Of a DNA stretch of 64,000 bases, positions 2,374 to 59,511 are shown one piece after another (the first letter of the stretch is position 1; the number at the start of each line of letters is the position of its first letter). The notes beneath the pieces are model-generated. The model was not told the DNA's origin, searched no databases, and was given only the letters and a program-made list of their open reading frames with translations. The stretch lies in IMG/VR virus record IMGVR_UViG_3300046542_000227, positions 203,321-267,320 of that record, one strand, 5' to 3'. The translations under genes and the position numbers were made by a program.

Positions 2374-2925
2374 ATGAAAGAAGAGAATTGGATTGAAAAG
2401 TCGTTTGTTATCTACTTCAAATACTATCTGGAGAACGGTCGAACGCAACGGGCCCTGACGATATTCGGGGTACCCCTGCTGATCGGTGCTGAAATGCCAT
2501 ATGTCTGGCATTCGGGCTTTATGCTGTCTTTGTATAACTTCATCTATCTCAAAGATGTCGAACCGAAGACCGTGTCACAGGCACTGAAACAGCACAGGAC
2601 GGTCCCTCTGCTGAGCTGGCTTCTGGGTAACCATGTGGAAAAGGAAGAACCCTTCGAGGGATCTGCCTACAACACCACAGTTCGGGGTATTCGTTACACA
2701 ATCACCCGCCATGGTAGATGGACCTCGTATGAGCGGTTCCAATGGCTCGCCCTTAAAGGCAGCCGTATGGACGTATACAGCATCGCCAGCGATGAGGATA
2801 AACAGATACCGGAATTTACCTTTGCACCACCGGAATGGGCTGACCGCACGCCTTCCCCTGAAGAGGTGGTAAACGTAGCGCATGAGATGTACAAGCTCAC
2901 TGATTTCAGCCAACTCAACGAGTAA
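2374..2925 (+). CDS. Hypothetical protein (183 aa)
   Basis: GGAG RBS before ATG; first of three co-oriented small genes. Confidence 0.7.
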   Translation: MKEENWIEKSFVIYFKYYLENGRTQRALTIFGVPLLIGAEMPYVWHSGFMLSLYNFIYLKDVEPKTVSQALKQHRTVPLLSWLLGNHVEKEEPFEGSAYNTTVRGIRYTITRHGRWTSYERFQWLALKGSRMDVYSIASDEDKQIPEFTFAPPEWADRTPSPEEVVNVAHEMYKLTDFSQLNE

Positions 2926-2938
2926 ATAAGGAAGACCG

Positions 2939-3409
2939 ATGAATACTGAACAACTCCAGACCATCCAAACCGCGCTCGATGAGCATACCCGTGAAACTGG
3001 ACATCGTTACCGTCTGGGTTCCACCCAAGTCAACCACGAGGTGCTGGGTGAACATTATTTCTACGTCGAGCGTCGGGTGAACTCCCTGACCCAACCTCAT
3101 GTTCGTGAGATGTTCGGCGAGTGGATGAACTTCTTTGAGGTGGCCATTAGCCCCAAGAAGATCTGGCCCAAAGAGCGTAAAGATCTGAACACGCGCATCG
3201 AGCCCGATGCCATCCTCCACCTGCTGTACACGTCGTCAGTAATACACGAGCGGGGGATTATCAAGACTTGGCTTGATGTCATGGCTGAACTGGGTTACGC
3301 GATTTATGCCGTCGACATCCGTGGGCAAGATGATCACATCACTGCCGACATCATTGTCTCTAACCGTACGCTGGTGTACCAAGCCGCCATCACTATCAAC
3401 ACTAAGTAA
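2939..3409 (+). CDS. Hypothetical protein (156 aa)
   Basis: TAAGGAAG RBS; tight spacing. Confidence 0.75.
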   Translation: MNTEQLQTIQTALDEHTRETGHRYRLGSTQVNHEVLGEHYFYVERRVNSLTQPHVREMFGEWMNFFEVAISPKKIWPKERKDLNTRIEPDAILHLLYTSSVIHERGIIKTWLDVMAELGYAIYAVDIRGQDDHITADIIVSNRTLVYQAAITINTK

Positions 3410-10240: not shown

Positions 10241-12331
10241 ATGCTCGAACTGCTACTCACCGTAGGGCGGAAGACGACCGCAGCTGATGATTCGGATGTG
10301 CCATTTAATCCAGGCACTCCGTTCAAAGGCGTAGTACCAGCAGCGTCCTTTATCACAGGCGATACTCTCGCCGCCGCCATCAACTACCAAGGTGGTGTAT
10401 CCATTAACACGGACGCTGGATGGCTGCACTTTATCGAAGACAATGGTCTTGAGCTGTATATTGCCAAGAAGCCATTGCGTTATGGTATCTCCCCATCATA
10501 CAACGCCGAAGCATATGCTAGTGTTAACGGTGAAATCAATATCGCTGGTACCGTATACGTAATACGGGACATGTACGGTGCCGCCAGTATTTCAGGCGGT
10601 TACGGTCCAAGCAACGCTGGCGGTGAATGGAACCGTTACATGTACAACGTCTACGATCAAACCGATCGGGCGGGTATTCCAGAGGCCCTACTCTGGGGTA
10701 ATTACACCAACCCAATGTTGGGACTCCCTACCTCAACCGACGGGACCGACCTAGGAGATGGCGTCTTCAGCATCTGTGCGGACCACATCGCTGAAGGCAT
10801 AATAGTGCGCGGCAATGACTGGTACAACAGCAGTGGTGGTTACCACATTAAGGGTATCTGGTACGCACCACCCGGTAATATCCAGTCCTATTATGGCTGG
10901 CGTCCCATCCTGATCAAGAAGTCCACGATTCCACCAACACCGTTCAAAGGTGTGGTAGCACCCGAAGACTTAATTAGCGCACCTGACCTCGCCACCACCG
11001 TCGGTCTAACCACCGGTTCCCTCGGCTACGATCCTAATCCGGGCTGGCTGAAGTTTGTCAACAATGGCAAAACCGTCTACATCGCCAAGAAGCCGTTCCG
11101 GGTTAGCATCCTCTGGACGACGCTCAATGACTTGGGTGTGGTCTTCGGTACCAAGACTCTGGCGATCGGTGGTAAGCTCTATAAAGTTCGCTTGATGACG
11201 GGTAGTAACACTGACCCAGCGGATTTGGCTGCTGGTGAGTACGACACTCTCTTCTCACGAGTCACTGCGCTATATAGCGGTCCTGGTGAGCGTTGGGGTG
11301 AGCTTACGTACGATGACGTCGGATGGTACGGGGGTACGGGCACAGGTGAATTGTGTCTGTGTCAAGAACAATACGGCGGTGGACCGCTAACCCGAGGCTA
11401 TCCTGGTTTCGGTGGTATGTGGTATCAAGTGCCTACCGATACACATCCTGGCTATAGCTGGCGTCCAGTGTTGGAGCTGATAGGTGATGCTCCTACCATC
11501 ACTGACAGTTGGACCAAGCTGGGTGATCTGCCTGTGGCGATCAACGGGGCATCGGCTTGTGTCATCGGCAACAAGATGTACGTGTTCGGTGGCCAAGATG
11601 CTGGCTTTGCGGTTAAAGGCGGACTGTACGAAGTTGACCTGACTACGGGTGCTGTAGTTACCAAAGCGTCCGATGCGGCCAGACGTTACCACACGGCGGC
11701 AGCGATCAACGGCAAGATGTATATCTACGGGGGCTACACCACAGCTTACGTGGGTGATGTCAGGGTCTATGATCCGGCAACCAACACTTGGGCGAACGGT
11801 GCATTAAACGGCGTTGCTACAGACCGACATGCAGGTGTGGTGTACAACAACCTGTTCTACAACTTCGGTGGTAACGCAAGTCAGACACAGGCACGTTCTT
11901 ATAACACAGTGGGTGCTGCATGGTCTAACTACACCCCAACTGGTCTGGGTGGTTCTCCTTGCTACTTGGGTTCGGCTGACGTCCTTGGCACCAACATCTA
12001 CACCCACACTGGCTACCAATCGCAGAAGCAGTTCCGTAAGATCGACATGGTTGCTAACGTGTCGAGTGCACTGGCTAACCCACCGCATGGTTCGTATGGT
12101 CATGCACACGGTGCGATGCAGGGTGGTATCTACCTGCTGGGTGGTACGGTTGACGTGACTGGTAAAGACAAGGTAGTTACTCGTTACGATATCAACTCGA
12201 ACACCTGGAGTTATCTCGGTGCGATTCCTTACACCATCGGTGAACGGGCAGCTTGTGCGCAGGATGCAACCAACATTTACGTAGTGGGTGGCGTGGGTAG
12301 TCCAACAGCGATATGGAAATACACCCCGTAG
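10241..12331 (+). CDS. Putative virion (tail/baseplate-associated) protein: two ~190-aa phiKZ-type repeat modules plus a Kelch beta-propeller
   Basis: Modules FKGVV...GWL.F...YIAKKP.R...GE(W/Y)...Y(G/S)WRP; C-terminal Kelch repeats (KMYVFGG, KMYIYGGY, YNFGG, IYLLGG, IYVVGG). Confidence 0.75.
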   Translation: MLELLLTVGRKTTAADDSDVPFNPGTPFKGVVPAASFITGDTLAAAINYQGGVSINTDAGWLHFIEDNGLELYIAKKPLRYGISPSYNAEAYASVNGEINIAGTVYVIRDMYGAASISGGYGPSNAGGEWNRYMYNVYDQTDRAGIPEALLWGNYTNPMLGLPTSTDGTDLGDGVFSICADHIAEGIIVRGNDWYNSSGGYHIKGIWYAPPGNIQSYYGWRPILIKKSTIPPTPFKGVVAPEDLISAPDLATTVGLTTGSLGYDPNPGWLKFVNNGKTVYIAKKPFRVSILWTTLNDLGVVFGTKTLAIGGKLYKVRLMTGSNTDPADLAAGEYDTLFSRVTALYSGPGERWGELTYDDVGWYGGTGTGELCLCQEQYGGGPLTRGYPGFGGMWYQVPTDTHPGYSWRPVLELIGDAPTITDSWTKLGDLPVAINGASACVIGNKMYVFGGQDAGFAVKGGLYEVDLTTGAVVTKASDAARRYHTAAAINGKMYIYGGYTTAYVGDVRVYDPATNTWANGALNGVATDRHAGVVYNNLFYNFGGNASQTQARSYNTVGAAWSNYTPTGLGGSPCYLGSADVLGTNIYTHTGYQSQKQFRKIDMVANVSSALANPPHGSYGHAHGAMQGGIYLLGGTVDVTGKDKVVTRYDINSNTWSYLGAIPYTIGERAACAQDATNIYVVGGVGSPTAIWKYTP

Positions 12332-48391: not shown

Positions 48392-50617
48392 ATGGAAAAC
48401 ATCAAGCAACTGTTCGCACAGCGCCAGAAAGTTGGTGCTCAATTCAACGTCAAAGCTCTGGTAGAAAACCTGGAAGCCTCGATCGTTGCCGCTGGCTCGG
48501 GCCTGCGCATTCAGCCAGAAATGGCAGAGCGCGTTTCGCAGGAAGACTTCGGTTCTTCCGACGTTAAAGACAAGATGGTCAACGTGTACGAAGAGCTGTC
48601 TCGCTCTCTGGCCACCCTGGGCTTCGAATCGTACAACGCCGACCGTGGTGAAGACGCCGCTCGCATCAGCGACAACATGGCTACCGCTGCCACCATGGGC
48701 CTGTTCGGTGCTTCGAACGAATCCGCGTACAAGAAAGCTCTGCTGGCTTCGACCCGTTCGATCAGCTCCAGCGACAAGAACGTCATCGTTTCCCGTGGCC
48801 AGATGGTCGGCGCTGCCGGTTCCATCCCTGCTTTCGGCGAAGGCGTCTCCCTGGAAAACTACAACGAGAAGTCCAGCCGTGACTTCCGTATCGTTACCGC
48901 GGCCTACAACCTGAGCTCCTCGCGTCAGGATGCGTTCGCTGAAGCGATCTACCGCACCACCCTGATCAATGCTCAGGAAGGCGGCGCTGTTCAAATCGTG
49001 CCTTACGTGGCACTGATGAAAGACGTATACCACAAGACCACTGGCGCCAAGATGGACACCCAGGAAGTCAACGTGGTCGACGCCTACCGCGATCCTTCGA
49101 TCCTGGACCAAGAAAGCACCATGCTGATCCCGGCCGTTGCTGCCGGTAACACCGCCAACTTCGTAGCTGCTGGCGACGTCGCCGTTGCTCCGAAAGTCGA
49201 CGAGCGTGGCCACAGCTACAACACCGCTCCGCTGAAAATGGGCGCGAAGTTCGATCTGATCGGTATCTCCAACCACAACGCCCTGGTTGCTGGCGGCGTG
49301 CTGGACATCTCCGACACCATCGACCCAGCCGGTTCCATGAAGAACCTGTACATCAAGGCTGTTGGTAACGGCACCGAGCCTAGCCAGGTCCTGAAGTTCA
49401 AAACCGACAAGCTGCCTACCGCTACCTTCGTTCCGAAGCTGGTTGGTGACACTCGTCAAATCGCTGTTAGCTTCGAATCCGAGAAGCTGAAAGTGGTTGG
49501 TTCGACTCGCGGCGTGGGCGGCGGTACTCTGGAAGCGATCACCGCTCTGGACGCAGCCAAGTACACCCTGCACCTGGGCATCAAAGTCGACGGTTCGGTC
49601 TCGGTATCCCGTGGCCAGTGCCAGTTCATCTCCGGCCCTGTGGTCGTTGAAGGCATCGTTGACGAAGACGGCGTAGCAATCGACCACACCACTGGTGCGG
49701 GCGCTGCTCTGGTTGCCAAGCTCGGCGCTCTGACCGCTATCGGTTACGACCTCGACGCTCGCTTCACCAACACGAACAAACGTAAACGCGGTCAGCTTCT
49801 GCAGACCCGCGCCGTTCAGTTCCGTTACCCGATCTGGATGCACAGCCCAGTAACCCTGCTGCTGTCCACCATGGACGAGCAAGGCCCAGGCGAAGTTGCC
49901 CGCGCCCTGACCGTGGTAACCGACATCCGTAACAGCGCCAACGCTGTAACGGCTGCTCTGAACTACGTTGCTCAGCTGAAAGAAGTGGTTGGCGACAGCG
50001 CTGCTATCGCTGAGTTCGGCGACGTCGAAGGTGCTCTGAGCATCATGATGCGTCCGACCTACCGTTACTTCAAGCTGGACCTGACCGATGGTCGTCTCGA
50101 CACCATCCGTTCGGGCGACCGCTGGAACGACGTTACCGCTGCAATCCTCAACACCATCAAAGGCCTGCTGTTCCCGGCCTACCGTGATTCGAACATCGAA
50201 TCCGTGTTCCAGGTGGTGTCGGGTAACATCGACGAGAAGCCGAAGTTCCTGATCTGCACCGATCGCGAAATCGCGAACTACCTGCAGGAAGTCGGCGATA
50301 ACCGTACTCTGGGTGCTTACCTGAAGTACGACGTTGTTGCTACCAACAACAAGAAGTTCGACGGCAAGATCCTCGTGATCCCAACCCGTGAGAACCCAGG
50401 CGAGAACGACGTTCTGAGCTGGGGTCAGTTCTTCTTCGTACCAACCATCGTCGGCGACATGCCGATCGCTCGTGATGGCCAGACCTCCCGCGAAATCACC
50501 GCGGTACCGTTCAACCGTCACGTCAACAACATTCCGTTCGCAATCGAGATCGACGTTGTCGGCCTGCGCGACGTAATGTCCAGCTCCATGTACAACGTTC
50601 TGCTGCAACAGCCTTGA
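48392..50617 (+). CDS. Major capsid protein (phiKZ gp120-like)
   Basis: 741 aa; propeptide ending VSLE/NY; YNL...RQDAFAEAIY; GYDLDARFTNTNKRKRGQL; strongest codon bias; synteny with DnaB and the gp123-like gene. Confidence 0.9.
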   Translation: MENIKQLFAQRQKVGAQFNVKALVENLEASIVAAGSGLRIQPEMAERVSQEDFGSSDVKDKMVNVYEELSRSLATLGFESYNADRGEDAARISDNMATAATMGLFGASNESAYKKALLASTRSISSSDKNVIVSRGQMVGAAGSIPAFGEGVSLENYNEKSSRDFRIVTAAYNLSSSRQDAFAEAIYRTTLINAQEGGAVQIVPYVALMKDVYHKTTGAKMDTQEVNVVDAYRDPSILDQESTMLIPAVAAGNTANFVAAGDVAVAPKVDERGHSYNTAPLKMGAKFDLIGISNHNALVAGGVLDISDTIDPAGSMKNLYIKAVGNGTEPSQVLKFKTDKLPTATFVPKLVGDTRQIAVSFESEKLKVVGSTRGVGGGTLEAITALDAAKYTLHLGIKVDGSVSVSRGQCQFISGPVVVEGIVDEDGVAIDHTTGAGAALVAKLGALTAIGYDLDARFTNTNKRKRGQLLQTRAVQFRYPIWMHSPVTLLLSTMDEQGPGEVARALTVVTDIRNSANAVTAALNYVAQLKEVVGDSAAIAEFGDVEGALSIMMRPTYRYFKLDLTDGRLDTIRSGDRWNDVTAAILNTIKGLLFPAYRDSNIESVFQVVSGNIDEKPKFLICTDREIANYLQEVGDNRTLGAYLKYDVVATNNKKFDGKILVIPTRENPGENDVLSWGQFFFVPTIVGDMPIARDGQTSREITAVPFNRHVNNIPFAIEIDVVGLRDVMSSSMYNVLLQQP

Positions 50618-50715
50618 AGTAATAGGGCCCGCCCCCGGATCCTCGAAGACGGAAGTCTACGGTTTCTAGAGGGCGGCGTACCTAGAAGGCAGGAGTAGCA
50701 CGGAGTGCTGGAACA

Positions 50716-50762
50716 ACATAAAGCCCCCGGCCCTGCAATGGAGTCGGGGGCTTTATGCCGCA
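50716..50762. terminator. CATA-hairpin-TATG element after the capsid gene
   Basis: CATAAAGCCCCCGGC...GTCGGGGGCTTTATGCCGC. Confidence 0.8.
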
Positions 50763-50774
50763 TTTCAAAGTAAA

Positions 50775-50798
50775 TAGAGATATATATCATTCCGGTGA
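50775..50798 (+). promoter_or_regulatory. Candidate early (vRNAP) promoter
   Basis: TAGAGATATATATCATTCCGGTGA; lies upstream of the operon containing the nvRNAP subunit, as expected for an early unit. Confidence 0.75.
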
Positions 50799-50838
50799 CC
50801 CTCTGCCTATTAAACGGCATCAACTTTAGGATTGCATC

Positions 50839-51306
50839 ATGAATTTCCTCCTTAAAGTAGTAGCTGCTTATCAGGCAGTGCGGCACGTGGCAGAATGCTG
50901 TCGCGAAGCTAAATGTGAGACAGCCAAAGCTGACGTAGTTGCCCCTGCTCCCCAGGCAGTGGTAATCACCGAAGTTATTCCACCTCAGGATAGTGGCTAT
51001 CTGACAGCTGTAGAGAAAGAAAATACTCCCGACGCTAATAAAGTAGGTGTCAGCGCTTGTGCTGGCTCTATACCTGTTGCCGCGTTGTCAGGTTTTATAC
51101 CGACTGCTGTCGAGGAAGGAGACTCCTTCCGAAAATCCACAGGGCGAATCGGAGTCGATAAAGACTGCTCCACCGGTTCGCCTCTTATGGAGCAGCGACG
51201 TCGCAAAAAGAAACGTAGGTCGCCCCAGAAGCGGGCGAGTCTTCGTGAAGAGATCCCCAGATTCACCATAGTCGAACCGACCTTGGTTTCTGTGGAGATC
51301 ATCTAA
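50839..51306 (+). CDS. Hypothetical protein with basic cluster
   Basis: AGGA RBS; RRRKKKRRSPQKR. Confidence 0.55.
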   Translation: MNFLLKVVAAYQAVRHVAECCREAKCETAKADVVAPAPQAVVITEVIPPQDSGYLTAVEKENTPDANKVGVSACAGSIPVAALSGFIPTAVEEGDSFRKSTGRIGVDKDCSTGSPLMEQRRRKKKRRSPQKRASLREEIPRFTIVEPTLVSVEII

Positions 51307-58199: not shown

Positions 58200-58631
58200 T
58201 TACCCAGCGAAGGGCAGGACGATCGTTAGGTTAGGCACAAACATCAGGCTGTTGTTACGCCCTTGTAGTGTGGCACTAACAGAACCCGGTACGAGCGCGT
58301 AGCTCACGATATCATCCGGGTCGTAGGGTAGACTGTACTTACCGTAGAACGCCACTAGGGCATCACGTAAGGTGGGGTAGTCAGCGGCTTTACCGGGGAG
58401 GGCATGACCTGCGAAGTGATCGTAGATCCGAACCCGGTTATAGTAGTGCGTATCACTGCCAGTGTAGTCATTGCCGCTAGCCGTTACCAGAATCCGGGTA
58501 TTGGTTGTGCCTTGTAACCACACTTCAGGATTGCCGAACGTAACGTCAGCTACCTTGAGGGGTGGCTTCATGCTACTGTTGGCATTGATCGCCCGCACCA
58601 GAGCGTCTTTAGGAGCTTCGATGTAGAGCAT
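58200..58631 (-). CDS. Virion structural protein (baseplate/fibre family)
   Basis: LV..IN..., V.FG.P..., NT.I.V.A...Y.G....YNR pattern; GAGG RBS. Confidence 0.65.
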   Translation of the reverse strand: MLYIEAPKDALVRAINANSSMKPPLKVADVTFGNPEVWLQGTTNTRILVTASGNDYTGSDTHYYNRVRIYDHFAGHALPGKAADYPTLRDALVAFYGKYSLPYDPDDIVSYALVPGSVSATLQGRNNSLMFVPNLTIVLPFAG

Positions 58632-58638
58632 GTTGGCC

Positions 58639-59511
58639 TCAATCGTAATGAAGGAGTAAGGAGCCCGCAAGAGCCGTACAGCGCGCTGGGTCGATACGCA
58701 GTACTATGAGGTTCCTTTTGTCCGTTCGTGGCGTGTAGAGCTTAATAGGAGGCCCTGCGTAGAGGATCTCGAATGTAGGCACGATACCTTTGAGTTTTGT
58801 GCAGAGATTCCACGTACTCGGAGCATCTTGACAACGCCAGTCGTCTCCCGTCACTTGCAACAGGACGTTAGCCAAACGTTGTGGGGTCACTCCATTCGGG
58901 CTATCGATCAACGCACCCATGTCGTAACGGAACTTAGTAAAGTCATAACGAGCTCCGTAAACGAAGTCCGCTACACGACCTACCTGCCCCAATGAACGAA
59001 ACACCAAAGGGGCTGACTTCACGTTGAGTGCTGAGGCCAGAGTACGCTTGAGGGTATTGACCAACGATACTTTCAACGAACCAACCCAGCGCAGGCTAGT
59101 TGGCTTACTGACCAGTGTAGCATTGCCGTAGTTCGACACTTCTAACTGTTCAAAGTCATCGATGTCAAACACCACACCAGTTAACACACTCAAACGATCG
59201 AGGATGGCTTGGCCTGTGGTCGGCATGGTCAGGCCATCGATCACCAGAGCCTCTGTCGCGGTACGGAAGAAGCTATCGGGATCTAGTCGGGTGTAGGTAT
59301 ACTCCAAGAGCTTGGGCAGCGCAGGGAGGATCTGAGCACTGGAGGTCGAACGATTCGTCCGGATAGTCACCTTGGTGGCGAGACCACCAAGGGACACCAG
59401 TGCCTCTAAAGAACAGTTGGCAGGTTCCAGACTCAGGTACGTGCGATCAGAGATCATCGTAACCAAGCCAAAGAACGGGTCCATGCTCAAATAGCGGCGA
59501 ACATCAAACAT
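58639..59511 (-). CDS. Virion structural protein (gp127-like)
   Basis: YTYTRLD, SLRWVGSL, C..LAG.LLLHYD; same domain family as its neighbour. Confidence 0.65.
   Translation of the reverse strand: MFDVRRYLSMDPFFGLVTMISDRTYLSLEPANCSLEALVSLGGLATKVTIRTNRSTSSAQILPALPKLLEYTYTRLDPDSFFRTATEALVIDGLTMPTTGQAILDRLSVLTGVVFDIDDFEQLEVSNYGNATLVSKPTSLRWVGSLKVSLVNTLKRTLASALNVKSAPLVFRSLGQVGRVADFVYGARYDFTKFRYDMGALIDSPNGVTPQRLANVLLQVTGDDWRCQDAPSTWNLCTKLKGIVPTFEILYAGPPIKLYTPRTDKRNLIVLRIDPARCTALAGSLLLHYD

Follow-up and report, generated by a model that had tools for sequence, protein, structure and literature searches.

A known case of a capsid gene ending in a leaky stop is the A1 readthrough protein of Qbeta (Allolevivirus), in which a few percent of the ribosomes are generally held to pass the UGA at the end of the coat gene, giving a C-terminally extended minor subunit that is built into the shell. 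In dsDNA phages, longer minor isoforms of major structural proteins may result from programmed frameshifting, as in gene 10A/10B of T7 and T3, in the capsid and tail proteins of the Listeria phages A118 and PSA, and where Ig-like domains are added to capsid or tail proteins. In eukaryotic RNA viruses, readthrough may be stimulated by an extended stem-loop, which typically follows the UGA after a spacer of about 8 nt, lies in the readthrough ORF and shows covariation (PMC13517186). These stem-loops act on eukaryotic ribosomes and eRF1, and no such stimulator appears to be established for bacterial RF2-dependent termination.

The major capsid gene of the phiKZ-like Pseudomonas jumbo phage analyzed here also ends in UGA, and the 26 in-frame codons that follow evolve like protein-coding sequence. 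A small share of the capsid subunits very likely carries a conserved C-terminal tail made by readthrough, although this rests on sequence comparison without protein-level evidence. As opposed to the frameshifted isoforms, the extension lies in the zero frame behind a stop codon, so no shift is needed; the +1 and +2 frames contain stops. It has been lost several times, and a hairpin with covariation overlaps it. No report of this arrangement was found in the literature searched.

The 3' end of the capsid gene

The window, a 64,000-nucleotide stretch of IMG/VR record IMGVR_UViG_3300046542_000227, contains the features listed in Table 1. The capsid protein is 84% identical to the Noxifer major capsid protein and 95% identical to the relative P0001, and all hits carry PF25620 (PhiKZ_MCP). 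All features of the preliminary description were confirmed, including the fold of the region. Taken alone, however, they are not beyond chance. Among 260 roughly called genes of this genome, 108 (42%) have at least 26 sense codons after their stop, and stop usage is 31% TGA and 53% TAA. The remark that UGA is odd for a highly expressed gene is fair as a tendency. The hairpin of this single sequence is only modestly better than dinucleotide shuffles (z about -1.1 for the 84 nt without the terminator; a z of -4.7 is obtained if the terminator is included). Three palindromic hexamers (GGGCCC, GGATCC, TCTAGA) occur in about 60 nt, against roughly one expected; together with the natural relatives carrying the same element, this argues against engineering.

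Table 1. Features at and near the 3' end of the major capsid gene (window coordinates).
Position	Strand	Feature	Details
48392..50617	+	Major capsid protein gene, phiKZ gp120 family, PF25620	741 codons, ending ...QQP-TGA
50615..50617	+	Proposed readthrough site, leaky stop UGA	CCT TGA A
50618..50698	+	Proposed readthrough extension	26 sense codons (SNRARPRILEDGSLRFLEGGVPRRQE) plus the second stop TAG (50696-50698)
50623..50684	+	RNA hairpin overlapping extension codons 3-23	Outer stem includes CCGCCC (50629-34)/GGGCGG (50671-76), starting 11 nt after the UGA; apical AGAC-GGAA-GTCT (50647-58)
50697..50709	+	Small hairpin between the second stop and the terminator	AGCAC-GGA-GTGCT
about 50711..50750	+	Intrinsic terminator of the capsid transcript	AAAGCCCCCGGCCC...GGGGGCTTTAT
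50518..50886	antisense	Antisense ORF	122 codons
58200..58670		DUF7941 protein	Lacks the tail motif
58639..59511		DUF7941 protein	Lacks the tail motif

A permissive Rfam scan of 50300-51100 gave only sub-threshold chance hits, nearly all on the terminator hairpin and its 3' flank, and none in the extension hairpin. Pfam and PHROGs scans of four extension peptides gave nothing, the peptides being too short. A search for the capsid among genome contigs found no relatives. A scan of viral contigs for the exact pattern of the hairpin core gave 17 hits, of which two are the known relatives, and the other 15 were judged to be roughly what chance would give.

Conservation of the extension and its stop codon

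The observation becomes significant only through comparison with relatives. About 60 capsid-gene 3' ends were examined. In the Noxifer-like clade, nine 3' ends (eight distinct) have TGA plus 26-28 open in-frame codons with a conserved peptide, while seven others have TAA and no such extension. In the wider phiKZ-like group, 19 of 20 further TGA-ending capsid genes carry the motif extension, including PhiPA3, Phabio, the PA7/phiKZ type, 201phi2-1 and Psa21, and none of 26 TAA genes has the short tail directly after the stop. The 26-32% identical capsid genes of non-Pseudomonas chimalliviruses seen here all end in TAA. In phiKZ itself, the extension is present but unannotated. In total, every TGA-ending gene but one (26 distinct sequences) is followed in frame by 24-30 codons encoding R-x-x-E-[DNGS]-G-x-x about three times, then a second stop and the terminator, which is conserved in all relatives. 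The base after TGA is not uniform, being A (20), G (5) or C (1) but never T. A GTAGTGC... segment similar to the small hairpin is present in the TAA relatives L007 and L003.

On the capsid tree, the stop codon and the extension change together. There are 5-6 changes, with the two states switching together at least four or five times, and 4 of 4 informative independent pairs go the same way. The sequences are phylogenetically related, so the counts overstate independence, and the sign test on independent pairs cannot go below p = 0.125. One relative, L026, keeps the first codons of the old extension yet has TAA. With at least four or five losses, the extension is dispensable in several lineages.

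In the 17-codon core, codon position 3 varies in 17 of 17 codons and position 2 in 7 of 17. pS (0.7-1.0) exceeds pN (0.3-0.5) in all 28 pairs, synonymous sites are saturated, and all six Arg codons are used at one invariant Arg. Only the capsid frame is open in all carriers: its mean pairwise amino-acid identity is 0.62, against 0.23-0.26 in four other frames and 0.52 in the antisense frame that shares its wobble phase. No frame-disrupting change was seen, even where the nucleotide sequence has diverged to about 57% identity. The conservation test proposed in the preliminary description, which had inferred a minor extended capsid isoform, is thus passed.

The hairpin, which starts 6-13 nt after the UGA in the carriers, is also conserved in structure. 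In the consensus structure, 9 of 17 pairs show double changes, and 86.8% of cells are paired against 38-64% in slid controls. Extensions are more structured than control windows inside the capsid gene (mean z -1.94 vs. -0.13, Mann-Whitney p 3e-11). In contrast, DNA encoding the same peptide motif in the gp143-like genes is not consistently structured (z 0.0, +1.05 and -1.83). RNA contigs assembled from phiKZ-type infections carry the UGA and the extension unchanged and end at the place equivalent to the terminator, but say nothing about translation.

The peptide matches the extreme C-terminus of the phiKZ gp143 family (DUF7941), described as virion structural protein or lysis regulator (PMC12894885); head-to-tail oligomerization of DUF7941 has been proposed for Goslar (bioRxiv 10.64898/2026.04.21.720040). 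An hhalign comparison of the extension profile with the family gave 96.8% (E 2.4e-10), aligned to the last 25 columns. Both tails carry the three-unit R-x-x-E-x-G-x-x motif and occur in the same genomes. In gp143, however, the tail is an ordinary part of a 182-residue protein behind a DUF7941 globular domain, whereas upstream of the extension lies the HK97-fold capsid protein. The AlphaFold model gives the gp143 tail only low-to-moderate confidence (block-mean pLDDT 41-65), with no regular secondary structure. The gp143 tail does not depend on the capsid extension: all five searched genomes of TAA phages have gp143-like genes that match through the end of the profile, and in three of them the tail was read directly.

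Readthrough and alternative explanations

The best explanation, with a probability of roughly 0.8, is that most ribosomes terminate at a weak UGA (UGA-A, after a C-terminal proline), giving the normal 741-residue subunit, while a small fraction decode it and stop at the TAG just before the terminator. Decoding would most likely involve a near-cognate tRNA such as tRNA-Trp, as in Qbeta A1; no phage-encoded suppressor tRNA was found, only tRNA-Gln, -Tyr and -Asn. The added peptide consists of a short linker and about three 8-residue units, R-x-(L/T)-E-(D/G/N/S)-G-x-x, which may form a small beta-hairpin or meander with D-G or G-G turns. The stem-loop possibly raises the readthrough frequency, by analogy with the eukaryotic viral stimulators, but it could instead serve mRNA stability. 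The extended product has not been reported in the phiKZ or Goslar structure and proteomics papers that could be searched. [quoted passage not shown] The tail would therefore be displayed at capsomer centers, with an estimated some tens of copies per roughly 1,600-subunit shell.

The alternatives all appear unlikely. A purely non-coding 3'-UTR element, stabilizing or terminator-associated, would account for the covarying hairpin, for the excess of structure over coding controls and for the position just upstream of the terminator, and an open frame of 26 codons is common by chance. Pairing constraints cannot, however, explain the excess of third-position change, as position 3 pairs with position 1 of the partner codon in a codon-registered stem. 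Nor can they explain the six Arg codons, the conserved residues in loop regions, or a frame kept in register with the capsid gene through indels that are always multiples of three, and they predict neither the TGA/TAA split nor the homology to a real protein tail. A decaying relic of a once longer C-terminus would fit the repeated deletions, but would accumulate stops and frameshifts. None is seen in 26 distinct sequences, and TGA and peptide are retained across lineages whose synonymous sites are saturated and whose capsid proteins are only about 50% identical.

A separate small protein, made by independent or coupled re-initiation or from the antisense ORF, is also unlikely. The antisense frame is open in the window, Noxifer and the relative L004, but has stops in the relatives L032 and L033, and its putative start is not conserved in frame. 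In the sense frame, no ATG, GTG or TTG is conserved between the UGA and the motif, the motif frame is the capsid frame in all 26 distinct carriers although linker lengths vary, and a free 20-residue peptide would not explain the TGA/TAA correlation. Selenocysteine insertion, suggested as speculative in the preliminary description through a SECIS-like hairpin, is not supported. The spacing in the window (hairpin 11 nt and GGAA loop 33 nt downstream of the UGA) is probably within the loose range of bacterial SECIS elements, and Pseudomonas hosts are likely to possess Sec machinery, although the host genome of this record is not known. However, the apical loops differ completely among carriers (GGAA, AUUAUAC, larger loops), relatives have TGA or TAA and never a Cys codon at the site, no tRNA-Sec is encoded by the phage, and a single Sec at a linker position has no obvious role. 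Nothing bears on the metal-binding role also suggested, whereas docking remains a reasonable guess, because the same tail ends the gp143-family virion protein.

The shared tail suggests a common docking or association module. More tentatively, it may be portable between the capsid protein, the gp143-family protein and, in some phages, an Ig-like decoration domain; the relatives L064 and L047 have Ig-like domains in frame after the capsid stop. A few tens of copies at capsomer centers, their number set by a hairpin-tuned leaky UGA, would then recruit a common partner to the head, such as DUF7941 filaments, a trafficking or nucleus-docking factor, or the lysis-timing circuit. If this doubtful possibility holds, it would be the first programmed readthrough described in a dsDNA jumbo phage and the first bacterial case with a structured 3' stimulator.

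phiKZ and its relatives are the main models for nucleus-forming jumbo phages and are candidates for phage therapy. Their capsids have been solved to about 3.5 Å and their virions catalogued by mass spectrometry, yet the capsid gene is annotated as ending at the UGA. A conserved, sub-stoichiometric tail at capsomer centers would be invisible to symmetrized cryo-EM and to standard proteomics databases. The site is also a ready-made position for low-copy peptide display on jumbo-phage heads, and the hairpin would offer a natural bacterial example of a possible readthrough-stimulating RNA structure. The tail could explain how something attaches to the heads, for example, fibers, trafficking or docking factors, or a link to the gp143 lysis regulator, and it would extend programmed stop-codon readthrough, known for small RNA phages, to large dsDNA phages.

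The capsid gene and its 3' end

The virus record, of which the window forms the last 64 kb, is 267,320 bp long and has terminal repeats. The ORF of interest encodes a 741-residue major capsid protein (MCP) of the phiKZ gp120 family. It is 84% identical to the MCP of Pseudomonas phage Noxifer and about 50% identical to those of PhiPA3, 201phi2-1, Phabio and Psa21, and all hits carry PF25620. The gene order around it matches that of Noxifer and phiKZ: a DnaB-like helicase, a gp119-like gene, the MCP and then small genes.

Every detail of the preliminary description, which proposed a minor capsid isoform extended by UGA readthrough, is present in the sequence. The gene ends in CCT TGA A, 26 sense codons follow up to a TAG, and two complementary arms enclose AGAC-GGAA-GTCT upstream of a strong intrinsic terminator. 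Taken alone, this arrangement is unremarkable. In a rough gene call of the whole genome, 108 of 260 genes have at least 26 sense codons after their stop, and 81 of 260 end in TGA. The hairpin of this one sequence is only about one standard deviation better than dinucleotide shuffles once the terminator is left out, and Rfam has nothing for it. The small extra hairpin (AGCAC-GGA-GTGCT) between the second stop and the terminator is also present, in variant form, in two relatives ending in TAA (L007 and L003; L numbers designate the collected loci), but it is absent from Noxifer and L004. Between the terminator and the next gene, a strongly conserved block (ATATATATCAT...GTGACCCTCTGCCT...AACGGCATC...) is shared by Noxifer-like phages, even those that lost the extension. 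It is probably a late promoter and 5' leader of the phage's own RNA polymerase; a sigma-70 scan found no promoter here.

Coordinates of the features in the window, in the rest of the phage genome (G000) and in related records
Sequence	Coordinates	Strand	Feature
Window	48392-50617		MCP ORF
Window	50615-50617		TGA stop of the MCP gene
Window	50629-34 and 50671-76		Complementary arms around AGAC-GGAA-GTCT
Window	50696-98		TAG, second stop
Window	50697-50709		Small extra hairpin
Window	about 50711-50750		Intrinsic terminator
Window	50518-50886	antisense	ORF sharing the wobble positions of the MCP frame
Window	50783-50838		Conserved block between terminator and next gene
Window	58200-58670	-	DUF7941 gene
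Window	58639-59511	-	DUF7941 gene
G000:C1	11200-11745 (also delimited as 11197-11745; L036:3198-3746)	-	gp143-like DUF7941 protein, outside the window
G000:C1	75110-77311		Three tRNAs, outside the window
L064 (IMGVR_UViG_3300037502_002993)	2842-3130		Ig-like domain and tail behind the capsid gene
L047 and L092 (IMGVR_UViG_3300043122_000192)	L047:2863-3405		Region of the 203-codon ORF behind the capsid gene
G004 (record of L045), C1	26908-27426 and 30200-30727		Two gp143-like paralogues

Conservation and coding signature of the extension

MCP 3' ends were collected from IMG/VR, JGI and ENA metagenomes, Logan assemblies and GenBank. In the Noxifer-like clade, the picture is binary. The window, Noxifer, L004, L027, L028, L032, L033/L034 and L035 end in TGA and continue in frame for 26-28 codons, whereas L007/L008 (95% identical MCP), L003, L026, L029, L030, L031 and L006 end in TAA and lack the segment. 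The extensions align without frame-breaking gaps, the length differences being whole codons, and share R-x-(L/F)-E-D-(G/Y)-(S/T)-(L/F)-R-x-(T/L)-E-(G/S)-G-x-x-R. L032-L035 differ from the window at 43% of core nucleotides, yet keep the peptide: Arg is encoded by CGG in one and AGA in another, and Leu by CTC, CTT, CTG or CTA.

Nei-Gojobori counts give a pS of 0.66-1.05 against a pN of 0.28-0.50 between the divergent lineages, and pS exceeds pN in all 28 pairs. In the 17-codon core, every third position varies, but only seven second positions do. When the ungapped core was translated in all six frames, only the MCP frame was free of stops in every lineage. This frame has the highest amino-acid identity (0.62, against a nucleotide identity of 0.57), and four other frames reach only 0.23-0.26.

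With an alignment of twelve MCPs, 49 loci were retrieved from IMG/VR. Twenty of the 46 new loci end in TGA, and 19 of those are followed by a 24-30-codon extension of the same design, including PhiPA3, Phabio, PA7 (phiKZ type), 201phi2-1 and Psa21. All 26 TAA loci lack it, including every distant MCP at 26-32% identity. The phiKZ RefSeq sequence itself reads ...KP-TGA-G, then AGKGYRYLENGTIRYLEDGNARKLEE, TAA and the terminator, and nothing is annotated there. Over 26 distinct carriers, the invariant first Arg uses all six Arg codons, and the Gly positions use all four Gly codons. The base after TGA is A (20), G (5) or C (1), but never T, and the second stop is TAA, TGA or TAG.

On a maximum-likelihood MCP tree, the two states need 5-6 changes, and the stop codon and the extension change together. 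All four informative independent pairs go the same way and none goes the other way, although the sign test cannot go below 0.125 with so few pairs. L026 still has the first five codons of the former extension behind its stop, yet the stop is TAA; so, at least there, the TGA was replaced rather than merely deleted along with the segment. This is what selection would do if a UGA at this position is appreciably leaky: keep it while the tail is useful and tighten it to UAA once the tail is gone.

RNA structure and alternative readings

All 26 extensions fold better than their dinucleotide shuffles (mean z of -1.94 to -2.08 in two runs, with 10-11 below -2). In comparison, 78 control windows of the same length inside the same MCP genes give a mean z of -0.13, with none below -2 (Mann-Whitney p = 3e-11, not corrected for relatedness). 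In the Noxifer-like clade, RNAalifold finds a common three-helix stem-loop beginning 6-13 nt after the UGA, and nine of its 17 pairs show changes on both sides. Of the cells, 86.8% are paired, against 38-64% when partners are slid; the covariation score is 0.50 against 0.12-0.24, and no shuffle of 500 reaches the observed value. DNA encoding the same peptide motif at the end of the gp143-like genes is not consistently structured (z of 0.0 for this phage, +1.05 for Noxifer and -1.83 for phiKZ). The structure is therefore not just a consequence of the codons, and a second, RNA-level constraint is inferred, most simply a stimulator of readthrough. That the hairpin modulates readthrough is about as likely as not, and a role in mRNA 3' stability cannot be excluded.

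The only frame that mimics the MCP frame is the antisense frame sharing its wobble positions, which in the window is part of an antisense ORF, but it has stops in L032 and L033 and no conserved start. The SECIS-like role of the hairpin, raised as speculative in the preliminary description, is not supported: the loops are not conserved, no relative has Cys at the site, and the phage encodes only three tRNAs (Gln-ttg, Tyr-gta and Asn-gtt), none of which is a suppressor or tRNA-Sec. RNA-seq assemblies from phiKZ-type infections contain the UGA and the extension unchanged, with no indel or joint, and their contigs end at the terminator just behind the second stop. The extension is thus part of the capsid mRNA, and RNA editing or splicing is not indicated, although assembled contigs say nothing about translation or rare variants.

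Resemblance to the gp143 tail and putative location on the capsid

A motif search of the six-frame translation of the whole genome found exactly one other copy, the last 22 residues of a 182-residue protein ending in ...RLLEDGTVRLLENGITRRLENQ. This protein, encoded next to an endolysin and the tail sheath gene, is the homologue of phiKZ gp143 and Noxifer gp141 (phrog_2935 'virion structural protein', Pfam DUF7941). The tail is invariant in its Arg, Glu and Gly positions across 18 family members and always ends the protein. A profile of the MCP extensions aligns to the last 25 columns of that family with a probability of 96.8% (E = 2.4e-10). An AlphaFold2 model of the 182-residue protein gives a confident globular body, but the tail has only low-to-moderate confidence (block-mean pLDDT 41-65) and shows isolated beta bridges. 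Two further DUF7941 genes in the window, probably counterparts of phiKZ gp126/gp127, do not carry the repeat tail.

phiKZ gp143 has been described as a non-essential lysis regulator that acts on the holin gp142 (PMC12894885). Another study lists gp143 among DUF7941 proteins and proposes that these oligomerise head-to-tail, with a disordered linker docking on the next protomer's N-terminal domain (bioRxiv 10.64898/2026.04.21.720040). All five searched genomes of TAA phages have gp143-like genes matching to the end of the profile, and the tail was read in three of them. One TAA-type phage (G004) has two gp143-like paralogues; the repeat tail was read directly in one (L099), and the other matches to the end of the profile. 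So, the MCP extension is an optional addition, not a partner that the gp143 tail requires.

In the phiKZ capsid structure, the MCP C-terminal arm (residues 728-747) forms a six-helix bundle around a roughly 9-Å pore at the center of each hexamer, and on pentons, it reaches between copies of gp244, which sits on the outer surface (PMC11297242). A 26-residue continuation would therefore emerge at capsomer centers. A T = 27 shell has, by our estimate, about 1,600 subunits. At a readthrough of a few percent, probably typical of a leaky UGA such as that of Qbeta, this would mean tens of tails per head, too few and too disordered for icosahedrally averaged cryo-EM, and they would be absent from standard proteomics databases.

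Two relatives add a hint of outward display. In L064, the capsid gene ends with a Pro/Glu-rich linker and TAA-C and is followed in frame by 95 codons without an obvious start codon: an Ig-like (Big_2-looking) domain that ends in the same R-x-TEDG-x-x-R tail. This may be a larger recoded extension or a separate decoration gene. In L047, a TGA-A is followed in frame by a 203-codon ORF that starts with an Ig-like domain and has an ATG at its third codon, preceded by AAGGG. It has no repeat tail, the usual terminator follows, and its closest relatives end in TAA with no insert.

The main interpretation of the preliminary description, a minor capsid isoform produced by UGA readthrough, is strongly supported by this comparative evidence, with a probability of about 0.8 that the tail is translated in this way. 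A function of the tail in docking or association is a hypothesis. No report of such an extension was found in the literature searched, including the two phiKZ structure papers and the Goslar preprint, but this search was incomplete and prior knowledge cannot be excluded. The feature extends well beyond this window to phiKZ itself. It is best regarded as programmed UGA readthrough of a coat gene, as in Qbeta, but in dsDNA jumbo phages, where it adds a short repeat tail shared with another virion protein and is overlapped by a conserved hairpin.
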